From Salpingoeca rosetta (lineage: Eukaryota; Protista; Choanoflagellata), in NCBI GenBank assembly GCA_033442325.1, contig JAWQFM010000030.1, positions 312,334 to 333,847 of the forward strand: a stretch of DNA of 21,514 nucleotides, read 5' to 3'. Under the pieces are notes generated by a model that was given only the letters and a program-made list of their open reading frames with translations, did no database searches and was not told where the DNA came from. Made by a program: the position numbers and the translations under genes. Shown here piece by piece: positions 9,205-20,556 of this stretch. Positions within the stretch are counted from its first letter, which is position 1; each line of letters opens with the position of its first letter.

Positions 9205-10292
9205 TTGTGTTCGGGATAATGAGATAGTTGCCTGCCTCCATAAAATAAATAAACTCGATAAAAAATGGCTGCACATGTATGCTTACACACCCCACACGCA
9301 GTATACACTCAGACATAATCATNNNNNNNNNNNNNNNNNNNNNNNNNNNNNNNNNNNNNNNNNNNNNNNNNNNNNNNNNNNNNNNNNNNNNNNNNNNNNN
9401 NNNNNNNNNNNNNNNNNNNNNNNNNNNNNNNNNNNNNNNNNNNNNNNNNNNNNNNNNNNNNNNNNNNNNNNNNNNNNNNNNNNNNNNNNNNNNNNNNNNN
9501 NNNNNNNNNNNNNNNNNNNNNNNNNNNNNNNNNNNNNNNNNNNNNNNNNNNNNNNNNNNNNNNNNNNNNNNNNNNNNNNNNNNNNNNNNNNNNNNNNNNN
9601 NNNNNNNNNNNNNNNNNNNNNNNNNNNNNNNNNNNNNNNNNNNNNNNNNNNNNNNNNNNNNNNNNNNNNNNNNNNNNNNNNNNNNNNNNNNNNNNNNNNN
9701 NNNNNNNNNNNNNNNNNNNNNNNNNNNNNNNNNNNNNNNNNNNNNNNNNNNNNNNNNNNNNNNNNNNNNNNNNNNNNNNNNNNNNNNNNNNNNNNNNNNN
9801 NNNNNNNNNNNNNNNNNNNNNNNNNNNNNNNNNNNNNNNNNNNNNNNNNNNNNNNNNNNNNNNNNNNNNNNNNNNNNNNNNNNNNNNNNNNNNNNNNNNN
9901 NNNNNNNNNNNNNNNNNNNNNNNNNNNNNNNNNNNNNNNNNNNNNNNNNNNNNNNNNNNNNNNNNNNNNNNNNNNNNNNNNNNNNNNNNNNNNNNNNNNN
10001 NNNNNNNNNNNNNNNNNNNNNNNNNNNNNNNNNNNNNNNNNNNNNNNCATCGCTACGACCCCACAAACCTATTATTCTTAAGTCTGTTTTTTTTTTTTCT
10101 ACTGTGTCTTTGCTTGTTCTGGTGCAAGCTTGAATGTACATGTGTGATGCTTTGAGTATGTTTGTGTGAGTGTAGTACCCAAGTGGTCGGTGATGAGGAG
10201 GAAGAATTTCTTTTAGAGCGTGTTAACCAAATCATCAGACTGTGACTTGGACGTCTTCTTCTTCTGCCCCAGTTCAAATGCCTGTGGGTTTT

Positions 10293-12544: not shown

Positions 12545-12999
<455 letters not shown>

Positions 13000-15814
13000 A
13001 TGAAGCGTCGCGTCGCATCCTTGCCTTCCGGTGATCGACAACGCAGCCGCAAGGAGCACGCTGCACACCACGAGGATGATGACAGTGATGACAACGGTGC
13101 GTTGCCACCGACGACAAAAGTGGCCAAGAGACACTCTTCGATAGCTGCCGACGTCAAAGCTCTCAAGCGAGCAGCGCGGATCTCGGCTCATGGGAGGAGG
13201 CAGACAAGACGACAACAACACACGTCCCCTGACTTGCGGCGCAAGACAAGATCGCCGGCAACACCGACGCAGCCAAGGCTTGCCCGGGCCGTGAAGACAG
13301 TTGAGCGACCGCCGCCATCTTTATCACCCTTGGCCTGGTCAACTTCAAAGAGGACACCAGTCGCCACCTCTCCATCACCATCACCATCACCATCACGGCG
13401 CTCGACAGCTGCAGCAGCGCCACCGTTGTCACACTCATCGTCGACACCGTCAACACAGCGAGATGTAACTTCGGGTCAACACTCAGAGCAGACGCCAAAG
13501 CAGACGCCGCTTGTTTCTTATCCGCTCGGCTTTATGATGACGTCGGGTGGCAGGGTGCGCCCCGCATCAGCACGGCGGCCGGTGTTGATTGCACGACCTC
13601 GACCAGTGCAGCGCCACGCACAGCACGTTGAAGGAGAAGCGCAAACACCATCGCCACAACCATCACAAACGCAAACACCACCACCACAACCACCACAATC
13701 ACCATCATCACCACAACAACAGCGTCAGGCTCATGTTCCATTCACAATCTCGCCATGGAAGATGTCGCAACACAAGGAGCACCCGCCCACGCTGCATGTG
13801 TTTGGCACGCCCATTCGGGGATGGATTGACAAACTCACGGAACGCCACACGCCCACAACCTCGCCGATGGGGCAGCTACAACATCACCACCAGCACCACC
13901 AGCACCACCGGCAGCAGGGGGAAGGAGACAAGGGATTGCAGCACAGCGAGCAAGTAGGTGCTGAGGGTGTGGGCGACGCAGACGACTTGCAGTGCAAGCT
14001 GTGCGGGTTTGAGGCGATATCACGTGCCGAGATGGCGGCACACCATCGCGCACTCCATGACAGTGATGATGAGGCAGAGGCCACACGACCGTCGCCTGCA
14101 ACAGCATCATCAACCGCATCAACAGTTCAAGCAACAGCGCCAACAGCAGTATCGACAACCTCACGAGCAACAGCGCAAGCAACAACACCAGCAACAGCAC
14201 CAGCAGCGACGCTGATGTCAGCCTTGTCTATGCCTGGACAGAATACAACGTTGCTTACGGGAGATGGTGGTGCTGATTGGGGTGATGATTGGGGTGACGA
14301 CGATGATCGTGTGAACTATGGTGGTGATGATGATGATGATGATCGTGGCAGCCATGGCGGCGACAGCATGGGCAGCGATGATCGGGGCGGCACTGAAGAG
14401 GATGCAGGCGGCGGAGTTGAACAAAGGAGTGGTCATGGTTTGGTACCACGCGTACACAAGCAGCAAGGAGGTGGAGAGACACGCGATGGTGGTGGCGATG
14501 GCAATGATGGCGACGATGATGATGATGGTGAAGATGGCGCAGAAGAGGAAGCGGTGAGGGCAGATGAGCATGGAGTGGAGCCTGTGTCGAAGGAAGGAGG
14601 GGAGGGGAAGAAAGCTGAGGATGAGGAGAAGGAACGAGCCAGCCGGAAACACAAGCGCAAGCAGAAGATGGAGGACAAGAAGAAGAAGAAGAACGAGGAG
14701 GAAGACGAGGAGGAGATGAAAGGGCAGCAACCGCCGCAAGAGGAGCATGAGAGACGCAAGCGCAGGCGAAAACGAAAGCGAAGGCGAAGACATAAGCACG
14801 AGCACGAGCACAGCGACAATAAACAACACGAGCACAATGGGGCACAGGGTCATGACGGCTCACAATCACACGCACAGCAGAACCTGGAGGAAGCGGAAGA
14901 AGGGGAGCAACGTAAGCGAGCACTAGAGAAACAGAGCAAGCAACAGCAGCAGCAGGCAAGAGGAAGACGAGGGAAGCGAGCAACACAACAGCAACGAGTA
15001 CAACAGCAGCAAGAACTGCAAGAGCAGAACCAGCGGTGGGCGCGACAGCATGCAGAGCAACTGCAGAAGACAGCGCATGGTCGACACAGTGATGGTGCAC
15101 CTTCATCCAGCTCATCATCCTCGTCACTGCCATCGTCATCGTCATCGTCCAAAGCAGCAACCACAACGACAGCAGTGGCCCTGAATGCGGGAGAGAAGGG
15201 GCAGGAACAGCAGCAGGTGCACGCAGATGCCACAAGTAGACAGCAGCAGCGATCATCCATACGACCGCACGCAACGCGACGTAGCACGCGACTGCTGCAG
15301 CTGCAGCAGCAGCACAAGGAAGGTGACGGGGATGGCACAGCCACCAGAGATGAAGCAGGCGTGAATGCACAGCAACTACAGCATAAGCAGCAAAATCAAC
15401 AGCAGGAACAGCAACAGCAGCATAAACAACAGCATAAGCAGCAGCAGAACCAGCTACAGCAGCAGCATAAGCAGCAGCAGCAGCAGCAGGAACAGCACGT
15501 CTTGTGCTCTGTGTGCAAGCTTCCTGGCCACAACCGACGAACCTGTCCAAATGCAGCCAACCCACCCGCGCATCAGCAACTGCAACAGCAACAGCAACAA
15601 GAGCGGCGCGCACACATAAAGCCAAGCCGCCAGTGGACGCAGCGTCAACGGCAGGGTTTGATGCGAACGGTATTCGGAAGCAAGCAGGTCGAGCGGGCAG
15701 GAGCGGTGCGCAATGATGCTGACAGGAAGCGAAGATCAATTCGACAGCAGGCGCTCAGGCGCAGAACACGGTTACAACAACAACAACAACAACAACACCA
15801 GCAGCAGCAGCAGC

Positions 15815-15881
<67 letters not shown>

Positions 15882-16674
15882 GCACCAGCACCAGCACCAG
15901 CACCAGCACCAGCACCAGCACAAGGAAGTTGACGGGGATGGTACAGCCAACAGAGAAGAAGCAGGTGTGGATGCACAGCAACATCAGCCACGGCAGAAAC
16001 AGCAAGAACAGCAGCAGCAGCGACGGCAACGACAGCCCGTCAAGTGCTCTGTATGCAATGGTGTGGGCCACAACCGTCGAAGTTGCCCGAAGGCAGACCA
16101 GCAACCGAGCGAGCAGCCTCAGCAAAGCAAAAAGTGCACGCTGTGTCAGCGGCCTGGCCACAATCGTCGCACGTGCCCACAGGCGGCGCGCCAGCCACAA
16201 GCAAACCAACACGACGGCCAGAAGACATCGCACGTGGCCCCGCAACAGCAGTCCAGCGACGCGACCTCAGCACCTGCTGCGTCCGAAACAGCCCAGCCAG
16301 ACCACGCAACGACGAACAAGCGCACGAAGAAGGTGTACGAGTGCGACAAATGCAGCTACACCACAACGCGGTCGTACAATTTCAAGGGACACTTGCGCAC
16401 GCACGCTGGTGAGAAGCCATTCAAATGTGAGCTGTGCAACTATTCAGCAGCCTCGCACAGCAACTTGATCAGGCACGTGAAGCTGCACACCAAGGGGCGG
16501 CAGTACAAGTGTGATGTGTGTGATTTCAAAACAGCCTGGCAGCAGAGTTTGGTGGCACACAGGAGGAAGATACATGGCCTTGGCAGCCACGACAACACGA
16601 CTGCTGCACGTGATGACGATGGTGATGGTGTTGATGATGATGACGATGATGACGATGGTGGTGACATGATGTGA
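13000..16674 (+). CDS. Gene D: Gln-rich, low-complexity nucleic-acid-binding protein with 4 C2H2 zinc fingers and 3 CCHC zinc knuckles (putative transcriptional regulator)
   Basis: Uninterrupted ORF from ATG 13000 to TGA 16674. An isolated C2H2 lies at 13993-14058 (CKLCGFEAISRAEMAAHHRALH). Knuckles C-x2-C-x3-GHNRR(T/S)C lie at 15505-15546, 16045-16086 and 16135-16176. Three tandem C2H2 fingers lie at 16336-16575 with a HAGEKPF linker. Basic NLS-like stretch RRKRRRKRKRRRRH. The start is uncertain because (CA)n..ATGCAG at 12997 could be a splice acceptor. Confidence 0.88.
15775..15920 (+). repeat. Coding (CAA/CAG)n poly-Gln followed by (CACCAG)n HQ repeat in gene D
   Basis: Direct reading in the gene D frame. 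Confidence 0.95.
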
Positions 16675-16994: not shown

Positions 16995-18134
16995 TCAGCT
17001 GATGTAGTTTGGCACGAGCTGGAGCATCTCCTCCTGGGTGAAGACGTGGCCGACGGCGAGCTGCTGGGCGATGGCGGTGGCCATCCCCTCAACATCAATC
17101 GTCTGGCCGTTCATCTCTGCCGCGAGGAAGATGGAGTACAGCTGCGTCGTGAACGGGTGCAGGCCCTCGGGGAAGTCCTTGCCTGCCGTCGGCTCTGTGA
17201 AGCGTGCGTCGTCGTTCTGCCAGATGGGCGCCAGGACCAGGCGGATGACATCGGGGCTCTCCAGAAGTGCAAAAGAGGACGCAAACACGTCCTCAACAAA
17301 GAGTGTGGAGCCATCGTCCGTCAGCGGCGTGTAGTAGTCTGGCTCGATGGTGGAGGTGATGCTGGTGATGGTGACTGTGTACACGACACCGAGGTCGGCA
17401 TCGTAGCGCAGCAGGCGGTCGCCAACAGCAAAGTCGCCAGTGAAGATGAACTCGCCTGCTGGCTGCACCGTCACGCCATCAGCAATGTGCACGTCCTCGT
17501 CTGCGCGGAACACAAAGTGGTCGGGTGTGGCCGACATCAGCGCAGGGTTGCCGTCATTGTCCGTGTAGTGCAGCTCGACAGATGTGGTGGTACCGTTCAG
17601 CTCCACGTGCTGGAAGGTCTTGAGCTCGCAGTAGCCAAGGGCGTTGCCGGCCGATGCCTGCAGGCACAGCACGCGGTCGCCAGTCTTCAAGTTCCGCAGC
17701 TGCACGCGCTCGCCGCTCTCCAGAATCACCTCGGCCCAACCAGGGAAGCACGTGGGGTTGGTAGACGTTGGATCAGACAGCACGACAGGGCAGTCTGCAC
17801 CAGAGTTCTTCAGTCGGGCACTGCAGCCGTGGGTAAATGTGCCGTTGATTCCAGCTTCTTGGAGAGTCTGCGTCGCGCCGGTCGCGTCTTGCAAGCGTAC
17901 AAAGTAGCGGTAGCGGTCGGTCCCCGTCGATAAGGACCAAAACGCCGTTGCATTGTCGAGGATGTTGTCGTATTGGTTGTCGGGTTCATCGGAATAACCG
18001 GCGCACTTGATCTCCGTACCAACAGGCGCGCCGCCGTCAATGGTAAATTGAAGGCCTTTACCATAGCTAGAATCATACAAGGACGCCACAGGTGTGCTGA
18101 TTGTTGGGCAGATGTTTTCGGGAAACCCTGAGTC

Positions 18135-18179
<45 letters not shown>

Positions 18180-18208
18180 CGTCGTCGTTGTCGTCGTCGT
18201 CGTCGTCG

Positions 18209-18246
<38 letters not shown>

Positions 18247-18308
18247 GATGATGTTGGTTCTAATAATGGAGATGATGCACGGCCAAAGAGTGTTAGGATA
18301 GTCGTCAT
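16995..18308 (-). CDS. Gene E terminal exon: poly-Thr stalk + unknown Cys-containing domain + Hedgehog-type Hog (Hint + SRR) autoprocessing domain
   Basis: Motifs T|CFPG, LRNLKTGDRVL, ATPDHFVF, VGDRLL, YYTPLTDDGSTLFVEDVFASSFA, VLAP and GLHPFTTQLY match the Hedgehog C-terminal pattern (CF; L..GD.VL; TxxH; YAPLT..GT..V..V.ASCYA; G.HWY...LY). Stop TGA at 16997-16995. The true 5' boundary is probably a splice acceptor near 18325-18330. Confidence 0.92.
17268..17750 (-). other. Hint domain (Hedgehog/intein-type) within gene E
   Basis: Cys1 codon at 17750-17748, block-B TPDH at 17528-17517, terminal ASSFA at 17282-17268. Confidence 0.92.
18135..18245 (-). repeat. (ACA/ACG)n coding repeat, about 37 consecutive Thr (mucin-like stalk)
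   Basis: In frame with the Hog domain. The mixed ACA/ACG synonymous codons support the Thr frame. Confidence 0.93.
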
Positions 18309-18431
18309 GAAGCATGACGGCGCGCTAGGCTAGATTTTTTGTTTTAGTTAGTGGGCAAGGATGATGGTAATCTAATACAGTGCATGTAAAGCGTGACGCT
18401 GCCCAACCACGACATGACAATCTAAGCATCA

Positions 18432-18857
18432 NNNNNNNNNNNNNNNNNNNNNNNNNNNNNNNNNNNNNNNNNNNNNNNNNNNNNNNNNNNNNNNNNNNNN
18501 NNNNNNNNNNNNNNNNNNNNNNNNNNNNNNNNNNNNNNNNNNNNNNNNNNNNNNNNNNNNNNNNNNNNNNNNNNNNNNNNNNNNNNNNNNNNNNNNNNNN
18601 NNNNNNNNNNNNNNNNNNNNNNNNNNNNNNNNNNNNNNNNNNNNNNNNNNNNNNNNNNNNNNNNNNNNNNNNNNNNNNNNNNNNNNNNNNNNNNNNNNNN
18701 NNNNNNNNNNNNNNNNNNNNNNNNNNNNNNNNNNNNNNNNNNNNNNNNNNNNNNNNNNNNNNNNNNNNNNNNNNNNNNNNNNNNNNNNNNNNNNNNNNNN
18801 NNNNNNNNNNNNNNNNNNNNNNNNNNNNNNNNNNNNNNNNNNNNNNNNNNNNNNNNN
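18432..18857. other. Assembly gap (N run) between the 5' exons and the Hog exon of gene E
   Basis: Run of N. Confidence 0.98.
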
Positions 18858-20170
18858 CAGTGACTGAGCAGAATGTTGAAACGGAACCCTGTCCACTGTC
18901 ATTGCCGCAGACCTGTAGCAGCTGTACGTGCTGCTGGGTGAGGTGGTGGTGCAGAAAATGTGGTCCGTTGATGACTTCAATCGTGGCTGCTGTGTCGCCG
19001 TTGTACCCGGCACACCTGCGTGCGTGTGCATTTGGGTCATGGGAAGAAACAGCAAAGGTGAAATGTGCGTGAGTGTTTGTGTGTGTTTGTGTGTGTAAGT
19101 GTGCGTGTGTGTGTGTGTGTATACATACGTGAGTGAAAGGGCGTGCCTACACGCACACAAACATCCGCATGCATAAACATAGAACACACGCTGACACAGA
19201 ACGCCAGCAACTCACGCGTCCAATGTTGCAGTCCTCAGCGAGGGCCTGCTTCCAGCGCATGCCAAAGAAGTCGATACCGTCCTCATCGCGCTCATCAAGT
19301 GGTTCGCGGCAGTCGACAGTCACCTGGGCATGTGTGCACGTGCGTGTATCACAGGGTGTGTGTGTGTGTGTGTGTTCGTGTGTTTGTGTGGGTTTCGGGG
19401 AGATGAAGTTGTGAGAGACGTCACACAGACTCATGGCTGCTGCAAAGCCTGGTGTCAGACAACAGAGAGACGACCGGCAACGAATGAACGCTCATGCACA
19501 CAGAAGCAGTACACATGCGCCACGTGGCTGACGTGCGCACCTCAAACGTCGTGTCGAATGTGGTTTGGACGCAACTGGACACGGCGACGCAGCCGTTGGA
19601 TTCCGTGTCGTTGCAGCGGTACACCTTGAGGCAATCTGGCATGAAGGGAGACGAAGAGAGAAAGAGTGATGAGAAGGGATGTGCGGCAAGGCAGATGACA
19701 ACAACTTTGAGGGATTCGTATCATTGGTATACAAACGTGTATTGTCCCATGCATACACGCAAGCACACAGGTTTGAACTCTGAACGACAACGACAGCAAT
19801 CATGACAGCCATTGATGCTCACGCACCTCCGGTGTCGCACGCCTCGAACTGGCGGCACTGACACGCGCCACCTGTAAGTAGTGAGTCGAGGCCCAATGAA
19901 GTGGCAGGGATGAGACCAAGACTCGACACGGACCGACAACGGCAGGATGTAACAAACTTGCAAGCGCACAGGCACGCGCAGGCACACTGACCAAGAGTGC
20001 ATCGGGAGCGTGAGAGGCCAGAAGCCTGGCCCCTTTCAAAATGATAGCCGGTGGACGATGGGGTCAGCATCACACAGCCATCAATGCCCTGAGAGCCAAT
20101 GTGTGATCCAGGATGGAGAAGTGTCGGGAGGGGTTAAAAACAGAAGTGCGTGAAACAGAGAGAGAGAGAG

Positions 20171-20249
<79 letters not shown>

Positions 20250-20556
20250 AGCATGCGCAGAAGAACTGGAGACAGGACAAGGTTGGTCGGTAAACCCACA
20301 ATCACATCACACACACACACACACACACACAATCACACGTGAACGCACACACACACACACATACATGCGCATGCGCACATGCACGCACACATGCACACGA
20401 TACCGCGTCTGCGAGAAAGTCTTCCAAGGTGAGCTCATCGCCCAGGTCGAGGATGGCATCAGAGACACCAAAGTTGGCCACAAGTAGAGCAGCAGCGACC
20501 ACAAAGGCAGCCATGCGAGCGCTCGCGCTCGAGAAAGCCATATCAGTGGCCGACAT
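18858..20556 (-). CDS. Signal-peptide-bearing Cys-rich exons, probably the 5' part of gene E (alternatively a separate ~178-aa secreted protein)
   Basis: Phase-consistent exons 20556-20404, 20088-19992, 19871-19827, 19635-19541 and 19323-19216, then an acceptor at 19015. Translation: MSATDMAFSSASARMAAFVVAAALLVANFGVSDA-ILDLGDELTLEDFLADAGIDGCVMLTPSSTGYHFERGQASGLSRSRCTLGGACQCRQFEACDTGDCLKVYRCNDTESNGCVAVSSCVQTTFDTTFEVTVDCREPLDERDEDGIDFFGMRWKQALAEDCNIGRVC. The sixth exon reaches TGA at 18979-18977 as assembled, close to the contig edge. Confidence 0.75.

Follow-up and report, generated by a model that had tools for sequence, protein, structure and literature searches.

A probable gene for a secreted Hog mucin-like precursor in Salpingoeca rosetta, annotated as two models

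Hog proteins share a plan in which a signal peptide is followed by a variable cargo and a Hog module. Warthog, Groundhog, Quahog, Thog of Xiphinema and the Hogs of red algae and mosses all follow it (Burglin, 2008). In the choanoflagellate Monosiga ovata, Hoglet combines a long Thr-rich stretch with a non-Hedge N-terminal part that is released by Hog (PMC2362128). In this study, we analysed a 21,514-nucleotide stretch of the genome of the choanoflagellate Salpingoeca rosetta (hereafter, the window), whose minus strand holds a Hog open reading frame (ORF) of 437 amino acids (aa) at 18308..16995 and five upstream exons at 20556..19216. The locus would show the plan of the Hogs listed above, with cargo domains unrelated to theirs in sequence but with a cargo that is Thr-rich, as the Thr/Ser-rich cargo of Thog is (Burglin, 2008). 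The closest known plan is that of Hoglet, with different cargo domains. The cargo of Hoglet resembles cellulose-binding domains, whereas that of the window combines a Triquetra_S-S module with an FN3/Ig-like four-Cys domain (compared through the published description of Hoglet, PMC2362128).

Two genes are called at this locus on GenBank scaffold GL832992.1, which we found through the 437-aa ORF. The first (20556..18977) encodes a 178-aa product with the Pfam domain PF26750 (Triquetra_S-S), and comprises exons 1-5 plus twelve out-of-frame codons. The second is the 437-aa Hint ORF itself. On balance, we favour the explanation that the locus is a single gene for a secreted, self-cleaving, mucin-like Hog precursor, which most likely corresponds to PTSG_10585 plus PTSG_10584. 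The gene, its Hint domain, the Triquetra_S-S domain and the paralog architecture were already public; our study adds the probable merger of the two models, the beta-sandwich reading of the cargo, the structure of the family and the link to colony-biased expression. The features of the locus are listed below, in the order in which they would be transcribed, with the evidence for each in brackets.

20404..20556, minus strand: exon 1, start codon at 20556, signal-peptide-like, ending ...LADA (contig joint 20087/20403, PTSG_09162 homology, annotated gene start)
19992..20088, minus strand: exon 2, Triquetra_S-S module (contig joints in RNA runs X1, X5 and X7; tblastn to PTSG_09162)
19827..19871, minus strand: exon 3, three Cys (contig joints, translation)
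19541..19635, minus strand: exon 4, four Cys and an N-D-T sequon (contig joints; 78% identity to PTSG_09162)
19216..19323, minus strand: exon 5, ending ...DCNIGR in phase 0 (contig joint 19320/19538; 65% identity to PTSG_09162)
18858..19015, minus strand: exon 6, running into the gap (DNA alignment, tblastn, frames, annotation)
18432..18857, no strand: assembly gap (paralog structure; gaps at the same relative place in two other paralog loci)
18272..18431, minus strand: non-coding stretch beyond the gap, interpreted as an intron's 3' end and holding the annotated ATG at 18308 (frames, RNA depth)
18135..18271, minus strand: start of the last exon and Thr stalk (candidate acceptor ttattag/AA, phase 1 needed; an RNA contig reaches into the repeat at its 3' side)
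17751..18134, minus strand: four-Cys domain (paralog alignment, structural model, VIA-align)
17268..17750, minus strand: Hint core (Cys1, His234, TPDH, SSFA; Pfam and PDB matches)
16995..17267, minus strand: helical tail resembling an adduct or sterol recognition region (ARR/SRR), with the stop codon at 16997-16995 (end of the Pfam profile, structural model, RNA contig)

The Hog module and the four-Cys domain

Residues 183-393 of the 437-aa ORF match positions 9-207 of the 213-position Pfam Hint profile (PF01079) with a score of 79 bits (cut-off 29.7, E-value 5e-22). Extending to position 207, the alignment reaches into the SRR portion of the profile. The ORF is also matched by solved Hedgehog C-domains (6td6, E-value 1.5e-6; 6tyy, 2.8e-6; 1at0, 8.3e-5). 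As in the Hedgehog C-domain (Drosophila Hh-C, 1AT0/6TD6; PF01079, peptidase C46), the Hint sequence is accompanied by a Cys1 in CF, a TXXH motif and a predicted helical tail at the SRR position. Cys1 is residue 187 (17750-17748, context CFPGW) and the TXXH motif reads TPDH (aa 261-264); both are invariant in five paralogs. The tail after the Hint core comprises about 90 residues (aa 348-437), is partly covered by the Pfam profile, and is helical in the structural model with a low-to-moderate predicted local distance difference test (pLDDT) score of 57-77. Judged by its sequence, the protein is a Hog protein in the sense of Burglin (Hint plus ARR-like region). The preliminary description of this stretch had recognised a complete Hint domain with an SRR-like tail at the C-terminus, which the Pfam match and the helical tail corroborate. 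It had also called the N-terminal part non-Hedge; in agreement with this, Pfam gave no match to the Hedge (HH signal) domain in the 437-aa ORF or in PTSG_09162, which carries the Cys-rich module, these being the proteins scanned.

Unlike Hedgehog, the window protein has no Hedge domain, carries His in place of Asp303 and Ser in place of Cys400 of SCYA, and has Thr rather than Gly before the cleavage site. The Asp303 position falls on His234 in an alignment that is ungapped between two flanking anchors. SCYA is replaced by SSFA (aa 344-347), which places Ser at the motif-J Cys, and replacement of this Cys is usual in non-metazoan Hogs (PMC2362128). His234 is the natural counterpart of the engineered D303H of PDB entry 6TYY, a Hedgehog variant that remains active and takes a wider range of sterols (PMC9163320). 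Cys1 is preceded by Thr here, and by Ser or Pro in the paralogs.

The region preceding the Hog module consists of a stalk, in which 38 of 40 residues are Thr (aa 19-58, 18254-18135), and a domain of 128 aa (aa 59-186, 18134-17751) that ends in ...STNPT and contains two N-x-T sequons. The four Cys of this domain (aa 67, 102, 162 and 173) are invariant in four paralogs. These values are close to the roughly 125-aa domain with four Cys and the stalk of about 37 Thr reported earlier from the sequence. In the structural model the domain is a beta-sandwich of 7-8 strands (pLDDT 72-87). VIA-align returned FN3 in nearly all of the top 50 rows, with Z of 7.1-8.6 and a root-mean-square deviation of 2.3-3.6 Å over 82-92 residues, a Z range that may reflect the common Ig/FN3-like arrangement alone rather than family membership. 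The Pfam fn3 and CBM families gave no match in the 437-aa ORF. The domain adjoining Hog models as an FN3/Ig-like beta-sandwich arrangement. An Expansin_C-like cargo appeared as a feature lead in the Atlas search (0.83), below the reliability line, and was not confirmed.

An exhaustive HMMER search of 1.84 billion proteins with a four-Cys profile returned the S. rosetta paralogs and four weak repeat proteins (E-values 4e-6 to 1e-3). We rejected the repeat proteins as homologs of the four-Cys domain, the best hhalign probability being 67.5% over 53 columns. Two database proteins, P0004 and P0006, are secreted and carry at least five tandem repeats of about 100 aa before a right-handed beta-helix. 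A motif, ..SI.FTVDG.LP.G.D, is common to these repeats and to the first half of the four-Cys domain, with an hhalign probability of only 67.5%. Foldseek with the whole model and the Atlas shape search gave nothing usable, the Hint part being poorly modelled (pLDDT about 30) from five sequences.

The Cys-rich exons, exon 6 and the assembly gap

We found that exons 1-5 are spliced through four introns (20403..20089, 19991..19872, 19826..19636 and 19540..19324; all GT..AG, minus strand), seen in RNA contigs from three independent RNA data sets (2011, 2017 and 2024). The 5' untranslated region upstream of exon 1 reaches beyond 20700 in RNA contigs, and the contigs over exon 5 stop at 19250/19227, short of the donor. 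Together, the five exons encode 166 aa with a signal-peptide-like start and 11 Cys, and the second codon of exon 6 provides a twelfth. This result agrees with the preliminary description, which had placed signal-peptide exons and a 12-Cys module on the same strand across the gap. Per exon, identity to the N-terminus of PTSG_09162 is 65-78% over the matched stretches (tblastn). PF26750 is recorded in precomputed Pfam entries both for the 178-aa product of the window and for PTSG_09162. Literature searches yielded no description of a Triquetra protein domain, a single-sequence fold of the module was unusable (mean pLDDT 37), and an Atlas search with it gave no usable match. The cargo had been called unrecognised, which does not hold in full: the Cys-rich module is PF26750 and is on record together with Hint in PTSG_09162. 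The four-Cys domain has no relatives outside S. rosetta among the proteins searched. Both halves of the locus are under purifying selection. The ratio of nonsynonymous to synonymous substitution rates (dN/dS) is 0.13-0.21 in the Cys-rich module, 0.16-0.37 in the Hog exon and 0.27 in the four-Cys domain alone.

Exon 6 opens after the acceptor at 19016/19015, and two frames are open into the gap. In the phase of exon 5, it reads V-C-R and nine further codons (12 in total) before a stop at 18979-18977. The paralogous exon on locus L002 (3330-3659; this locus carries PTSG_07446 and a 669-aa model), in the same phase, reads V-C-R-Y-N-G-D-T-A-A-T-I.... The window has one extra G relative to this exon (CCGGGTAC versus CCGGTAC), in a G run at about 19008-19006, some 150 bases from the contig end. 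V-C-R and Y-N-G-D-T-A-A-T-I are identical to the paralog, on either side of the extra G. The shifted frame is the homologous one (tblastn E-value 2.7e-8, conserved Cys, 52 codons open up to the gap), with a dN/dS of 0.38. Pfam matched no family in exon 6 of the window or of the paralog. In the L002 exon, a Thr tract and a C-x3-C-x6-C motif come next, ahead of a donor. By analogy, the gap in the window should hold the remainder of exon 6, including the Thr tract and C-x3-C-x6-C, together with its donor and the first part of an intron.

Beyond the gap, stops occur in each of the three frames between 18431 and 18308, and a candidate acceptor lies at 18272/18271 (ttattag/AA). In a reading-frame test the two sides of the gap did not form one open frame, so any link between them must use a donor hidden in the gap. 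A direct splice from exon 5 to the acceptor at 18271 was rejected, as phase 0 reads the repeat as Gln and misses the Hog frame. All three Triquetra plus Hog loci carry a gap at the same relative place (L001:7714-8910, L002:3903-4539 and window 18432-18857; L001 is the locus of PTSG_09162), and these gaps adjoin Thr-coding ACN repeats and CA microsatellites.

One gene or two

We consider it likely that the Cys-rich exons and the Hog exon are one gene that was split into two models, and we infer their join across the gap. The 437-aa ORF starts with MTTILTLFGR... and has no signal peptide of its own, despite its Thr stalk, N-x-T sequons and four-Cys domain. The only signal-peptide-like start at this locus is that of exon 1. 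In addition, the stretch that holds the ATG at 18308 (18272-18431) has no RNA depth in any run. One gene is favoured because the Hog ORF has no signal peptide and its ATG region lacks RNA depth, and also because paralog identity in exon 6 persists on both sides of the extra G. Two paralog gene models contain both halves, PTSG_09162 (Pfam Triquetra_S-S plus Hint) and the 669-aa model on L002. As both cross gaps at the same relative place, they are supporting evidence rather than proof. Moreover, the Hog exon looks like a terminal exon that draws its targeting to the endoplasmic reticulum (ER) from upstream, since at locus L003 (PTSG_08068) it can be joined in frame to membrane-anchor exons. Expression points in the same direction: fragments per kilobase of transcript per million mapped reads (FPKM) of PTSG_10585 and PTSG_10584 are near-equal and correlate (log-log r 0.98) in eight samples whose values range over three orders of magnitude. 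Exon 6 homology, the paralog models and this co-varying expression make it most probable that the preliminary description was right to assign the Cys-rich exons to the Hog exon.

The S. rosetta assembly is based on 454 and Sanger reads, and another gene pair split by a gap was rejoined through PCR on complementary DNA in the genome paper (PMC4054682). In our reading, the split into two models would stem from the gap and probably also from a one-base assembly error. RNA contigs show transcription of the Hog exon, which is spanned with zero differences by a contig at 16960-18124. The RNA comparison proposed in the preliminary description, from exon 1 to the Hog exon, confirmed the introns of exons 1-5 and the transcription of the Hog exon, and ended at the gap, which no contig bridges. 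Contig depth over exons 1-5 and over the Hog exon is similar in two runs (30.7 versus 27.5, and 22.8 versus 30.7).

Several observations weigh against a single self-cleaving precursor. No RNA contig lies on exon 6 at an identity of at least 97%, and exon 6 is out of frame with exon 5 in the assembled sequence. Both paralog models that join the halves cross assembly gaps, and the assembly holds no gap-free Triquetra-Hog example. Many colony genes share the expression profile of PTSG_10585 and PTSG_10584, so that their co-variation is not specific to this pair. In run X7 (2024), the Hog exon is 7-15 times deeper than exons 1-5, which could be due to 3' bias or to a separate transcript. As for the chemistry, Ser stands at the motif-J Cys, neither the Asp general base nor the SCYA Cys of Hedgehog is present, and the general-base position varies between subfamilies, with His in one and Asn in the other, that of L002/L003. 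Finally, the public annotation, which was refined with RNA-seq, keeps two genes and ends the first at 18977. The preliminary description had named such an end of the Cys-rich exons as the outcome that would speak for a separate gene; it stands in the current GenBank annotation, and we judge it to be a gap and frame artefact.

If the annotation were taken at face value, a 178-aa secreted Triquetra_S-S protein ending at 18977 and a 437-aa Hint protein starting from the ATG at 18308 would be products of two independent genes. This would match the GenBank gene structure, the stop that closes the assembled exon 5-6 frame at 18979-18977 and the 7-15 fold difference in X7 depth between the two parts. 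We nevertheless consider two genes unlikely, as the 437-aa product would carry a Thr stalk, N-glycosylation sequons and a four-Cys domain without a signal peptide, no RNA depth covers its ATG region, the twelve codons after exon 5 leave a frame that is conserved with the paralog, and the FPKM values of the two models are near-equal and co-vary. A recently disabled copy, in which the extra G is real, only a truncated Cys-rich protein is made and the Hog exon is a transcribed but untranslated relic, seems quite improbable. The frame break is indeed present in the assembly, exon 6 lacks RNA contigs and the many paralogs could render the gene redundant; however, the Hog exon remains an intact 437-codon ORF with a dN/dS of 0.16 against its closest paralog, the family-invariant residues are all kept, and the break sits in a run of G close to a contig end (about 150 bases away) in a 454-based assembly. 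More improbable still is a Hog exon that ends a separate gene whose first exon, encoding a signal peptide or a membrane anchor, lies in the gap. Such an arrangement has a precedent in L003, which couples the same last exon to a different, membrane-anchor N-terminus, and the gap length is only an estimate. Against it, the estimated 426 bases must already accommodate the remainder of exon 6 (about 190 bases in the paralog) and intron sequence, and the order of Triquetra exons, exon 6, gap and Hog exon on one strand is kept at three loci.

Paralog family, colony expression and putative processing

The closest proteins to the Hog ORF are three S. rosetta entries, PTSG_09162 (89% identity), PTSG_07446 (81%) and PTSG_08068 (55%). 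A fifth family member is the 669-aa model, in tandem with PTSG_07446 on L002. The tables of the genome paper also list PTSG_10584, 11398, 13209 and 07447 under the Hedgehog Hint InterPro entry (PMC4054682). PTSG_09162, PTSG_07447, PTSG_07446 and PTSG_08068 share with the window the same last exon, with its Thr stalk, four-Cys domain and Hog (52-92% identity), and two of these four have the same Triquetra_S-S exons upstream. PTSG_08068 differs in that it appears to use a membrane-anchor N-terminus in place of the Triquetra module, and PTSG_07446 in that it loses its tail beside a gap and a retroelement.

With the ORF minus its Thr run and with the Cys module of PTSG_09162, word searches covered 5.8 billion proteins; like a word search with the complete ORF, they recovered only the three S. 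rosetta paralogs or the query itself. The searches missed the gap-spanning 669-aa L002 model, although its length is in range, and the window's own 437-aa product. From these sequence comparisons, the Triquetra/four-Cys/Hog family looks like a lineage-specific expansion. The suggestion that the protein is pre-metazoan found no support, since clear relatives were found in S. rosetta only, both among the 5.8 billion proteins of the word searches and the 1.84 billion searched with HMMER.

At L003:4906-6984, PTSG_08068 (327 aa, Hint) and an upstream 194-aa model look like one gene. The locus is gap-free, and its Thr-stalk/Hog exon can be joined in frame to the upstream anchor exons through a canonical donor and acceptor. 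From its start codon onwards, the joined gene would encode a cytoplasmic tail and a membrane anchor, followed by a short Cys region (C-x3-C-x6-C), about 70 residues of Thr stalk, the four-Cys domain and Hog. Such a gene would represent a membrane-anchored form within the family that lacks the Triquetra module. In the PTSG_09162 model, splicing bridges the gap of that locus and enters the four-Cys domain in its middle, so that exon 6, the stalk and most of the domain are probably missing from the model. On L002 (6171-7160 and 7188-10526), PTSG_07446 is a tandem second Hog copy without the ARR tail; a gap and an opposite-strand retroelement of Ty3/gypsy type lie a short distance beyond the end of its ORF. 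Similarity across the family is mosaic. The Hog exon of the window is closest to PTSG_09162 (92% aa identity), and its Cys-rich module is nearer to the L002 copy (80%) than to PTSG_09162 (72%). Compared over window 16998-20556 with L001 and L002, this pattern suggests recombination or gene conversion among paralogs.

On the plus strand, the product of a neighbouring gene (12616-16674) is rich in Gln, His and acidic residues and contains CCHC zinc knuckles as well as C2H2/REST-like zinc fingers. Because this neighbour matches the InterPro line of PTSG_10583, the models of the window are most likely PTSG_10584 (Hint) and PTSG_10585 (no domain in 2013). Both appear among the genes published as upregulated in colonies. 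Expression of the models taken as this locus, with identifiers derived from the zinc-finger neighbour, is colony-biased.

Altogether, we propose that the gene is switched on in colonies and that its product would enter the ER through the signal peptide of exon 1. The precursor would then consist of a disulfide-rich Triquetra_S-S head, the small Cys-containing module of exon 6, one or two O-glycosylated Thr stalks, the FN3/Ig-like four-Cys beta-sandwich and Hog. Hog would form a thioester at Thr186-Cys187 by an N-to-S acyl shift, which the presence of Cys1 and TXXH makes plausible. The helical tail would position a nucleophile that resolves the thioester, with His234 in place of the Hedgehog general base Asp303. 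This nucleophile could be a sterol, another lipid or simply water, among which the sequence does not discriminate. The second chemical step is uncertain, given that the general-base position varies (His/Asn) and that the motif-J Cys is Ser. The released product would be a mucin-like surface or matrix glycoprotein ending in ...STNPT. Cleavage, any adduct and the location of the product are what we infer from this scheme, and covalent anchoring is conjecture.

If the locus is one gene, the annotation of S. rosetta, one of the main models for the origin of animals, gives an understated picture of a family with five or more Hog precursors, in which a mucin stalk bears a Cys-rich head as cargo. Several of these, the two models assigned here among them, are colony-upregulated and are thus candidate components of the extracellular matrix that keeps rosettes together. 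The family also provides natural variants at the general-base position (His/Asn) and at the residue before the cleavage site (Thr/Ser/Pro), which would be cheap to test. A bolder reading, to which we give little credence, is that this Hog, with its natural His base, performs Hedgehog-type lipid (sterol) esterification outside animals and tethers a colony-specific, mucin-stalked adhesive protein to the membrane. In that case, lipid anchoring by Hog would predate the Hedgehog morphogen and would have first served the construction of the cell surface or matrix in colonies. The family does not inform the origin of the Hedgehog ligand, as it has no Hedge domain and its cargo is without detectable relatives outside the species.

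Two further observations concern the window. In raw reads of run X21 (2026), the stretch 17131-17739 shows ten fixed differences, present in nearly 100% of reads, and contigs of three older runs match this stretch exactly. We set the X21 reads aside as evidence on this copy, as most align at 95-99% identity with fixed differences and come from a paralog or another strain. The first mates of X21 are all on the plus strand, as expected for RNA from the minus strand. Elsewhere in the window, a second assembly gap lies at 9323-10047, where the annotation has two separate sulfotransferase models (221 aa and 437 aa).

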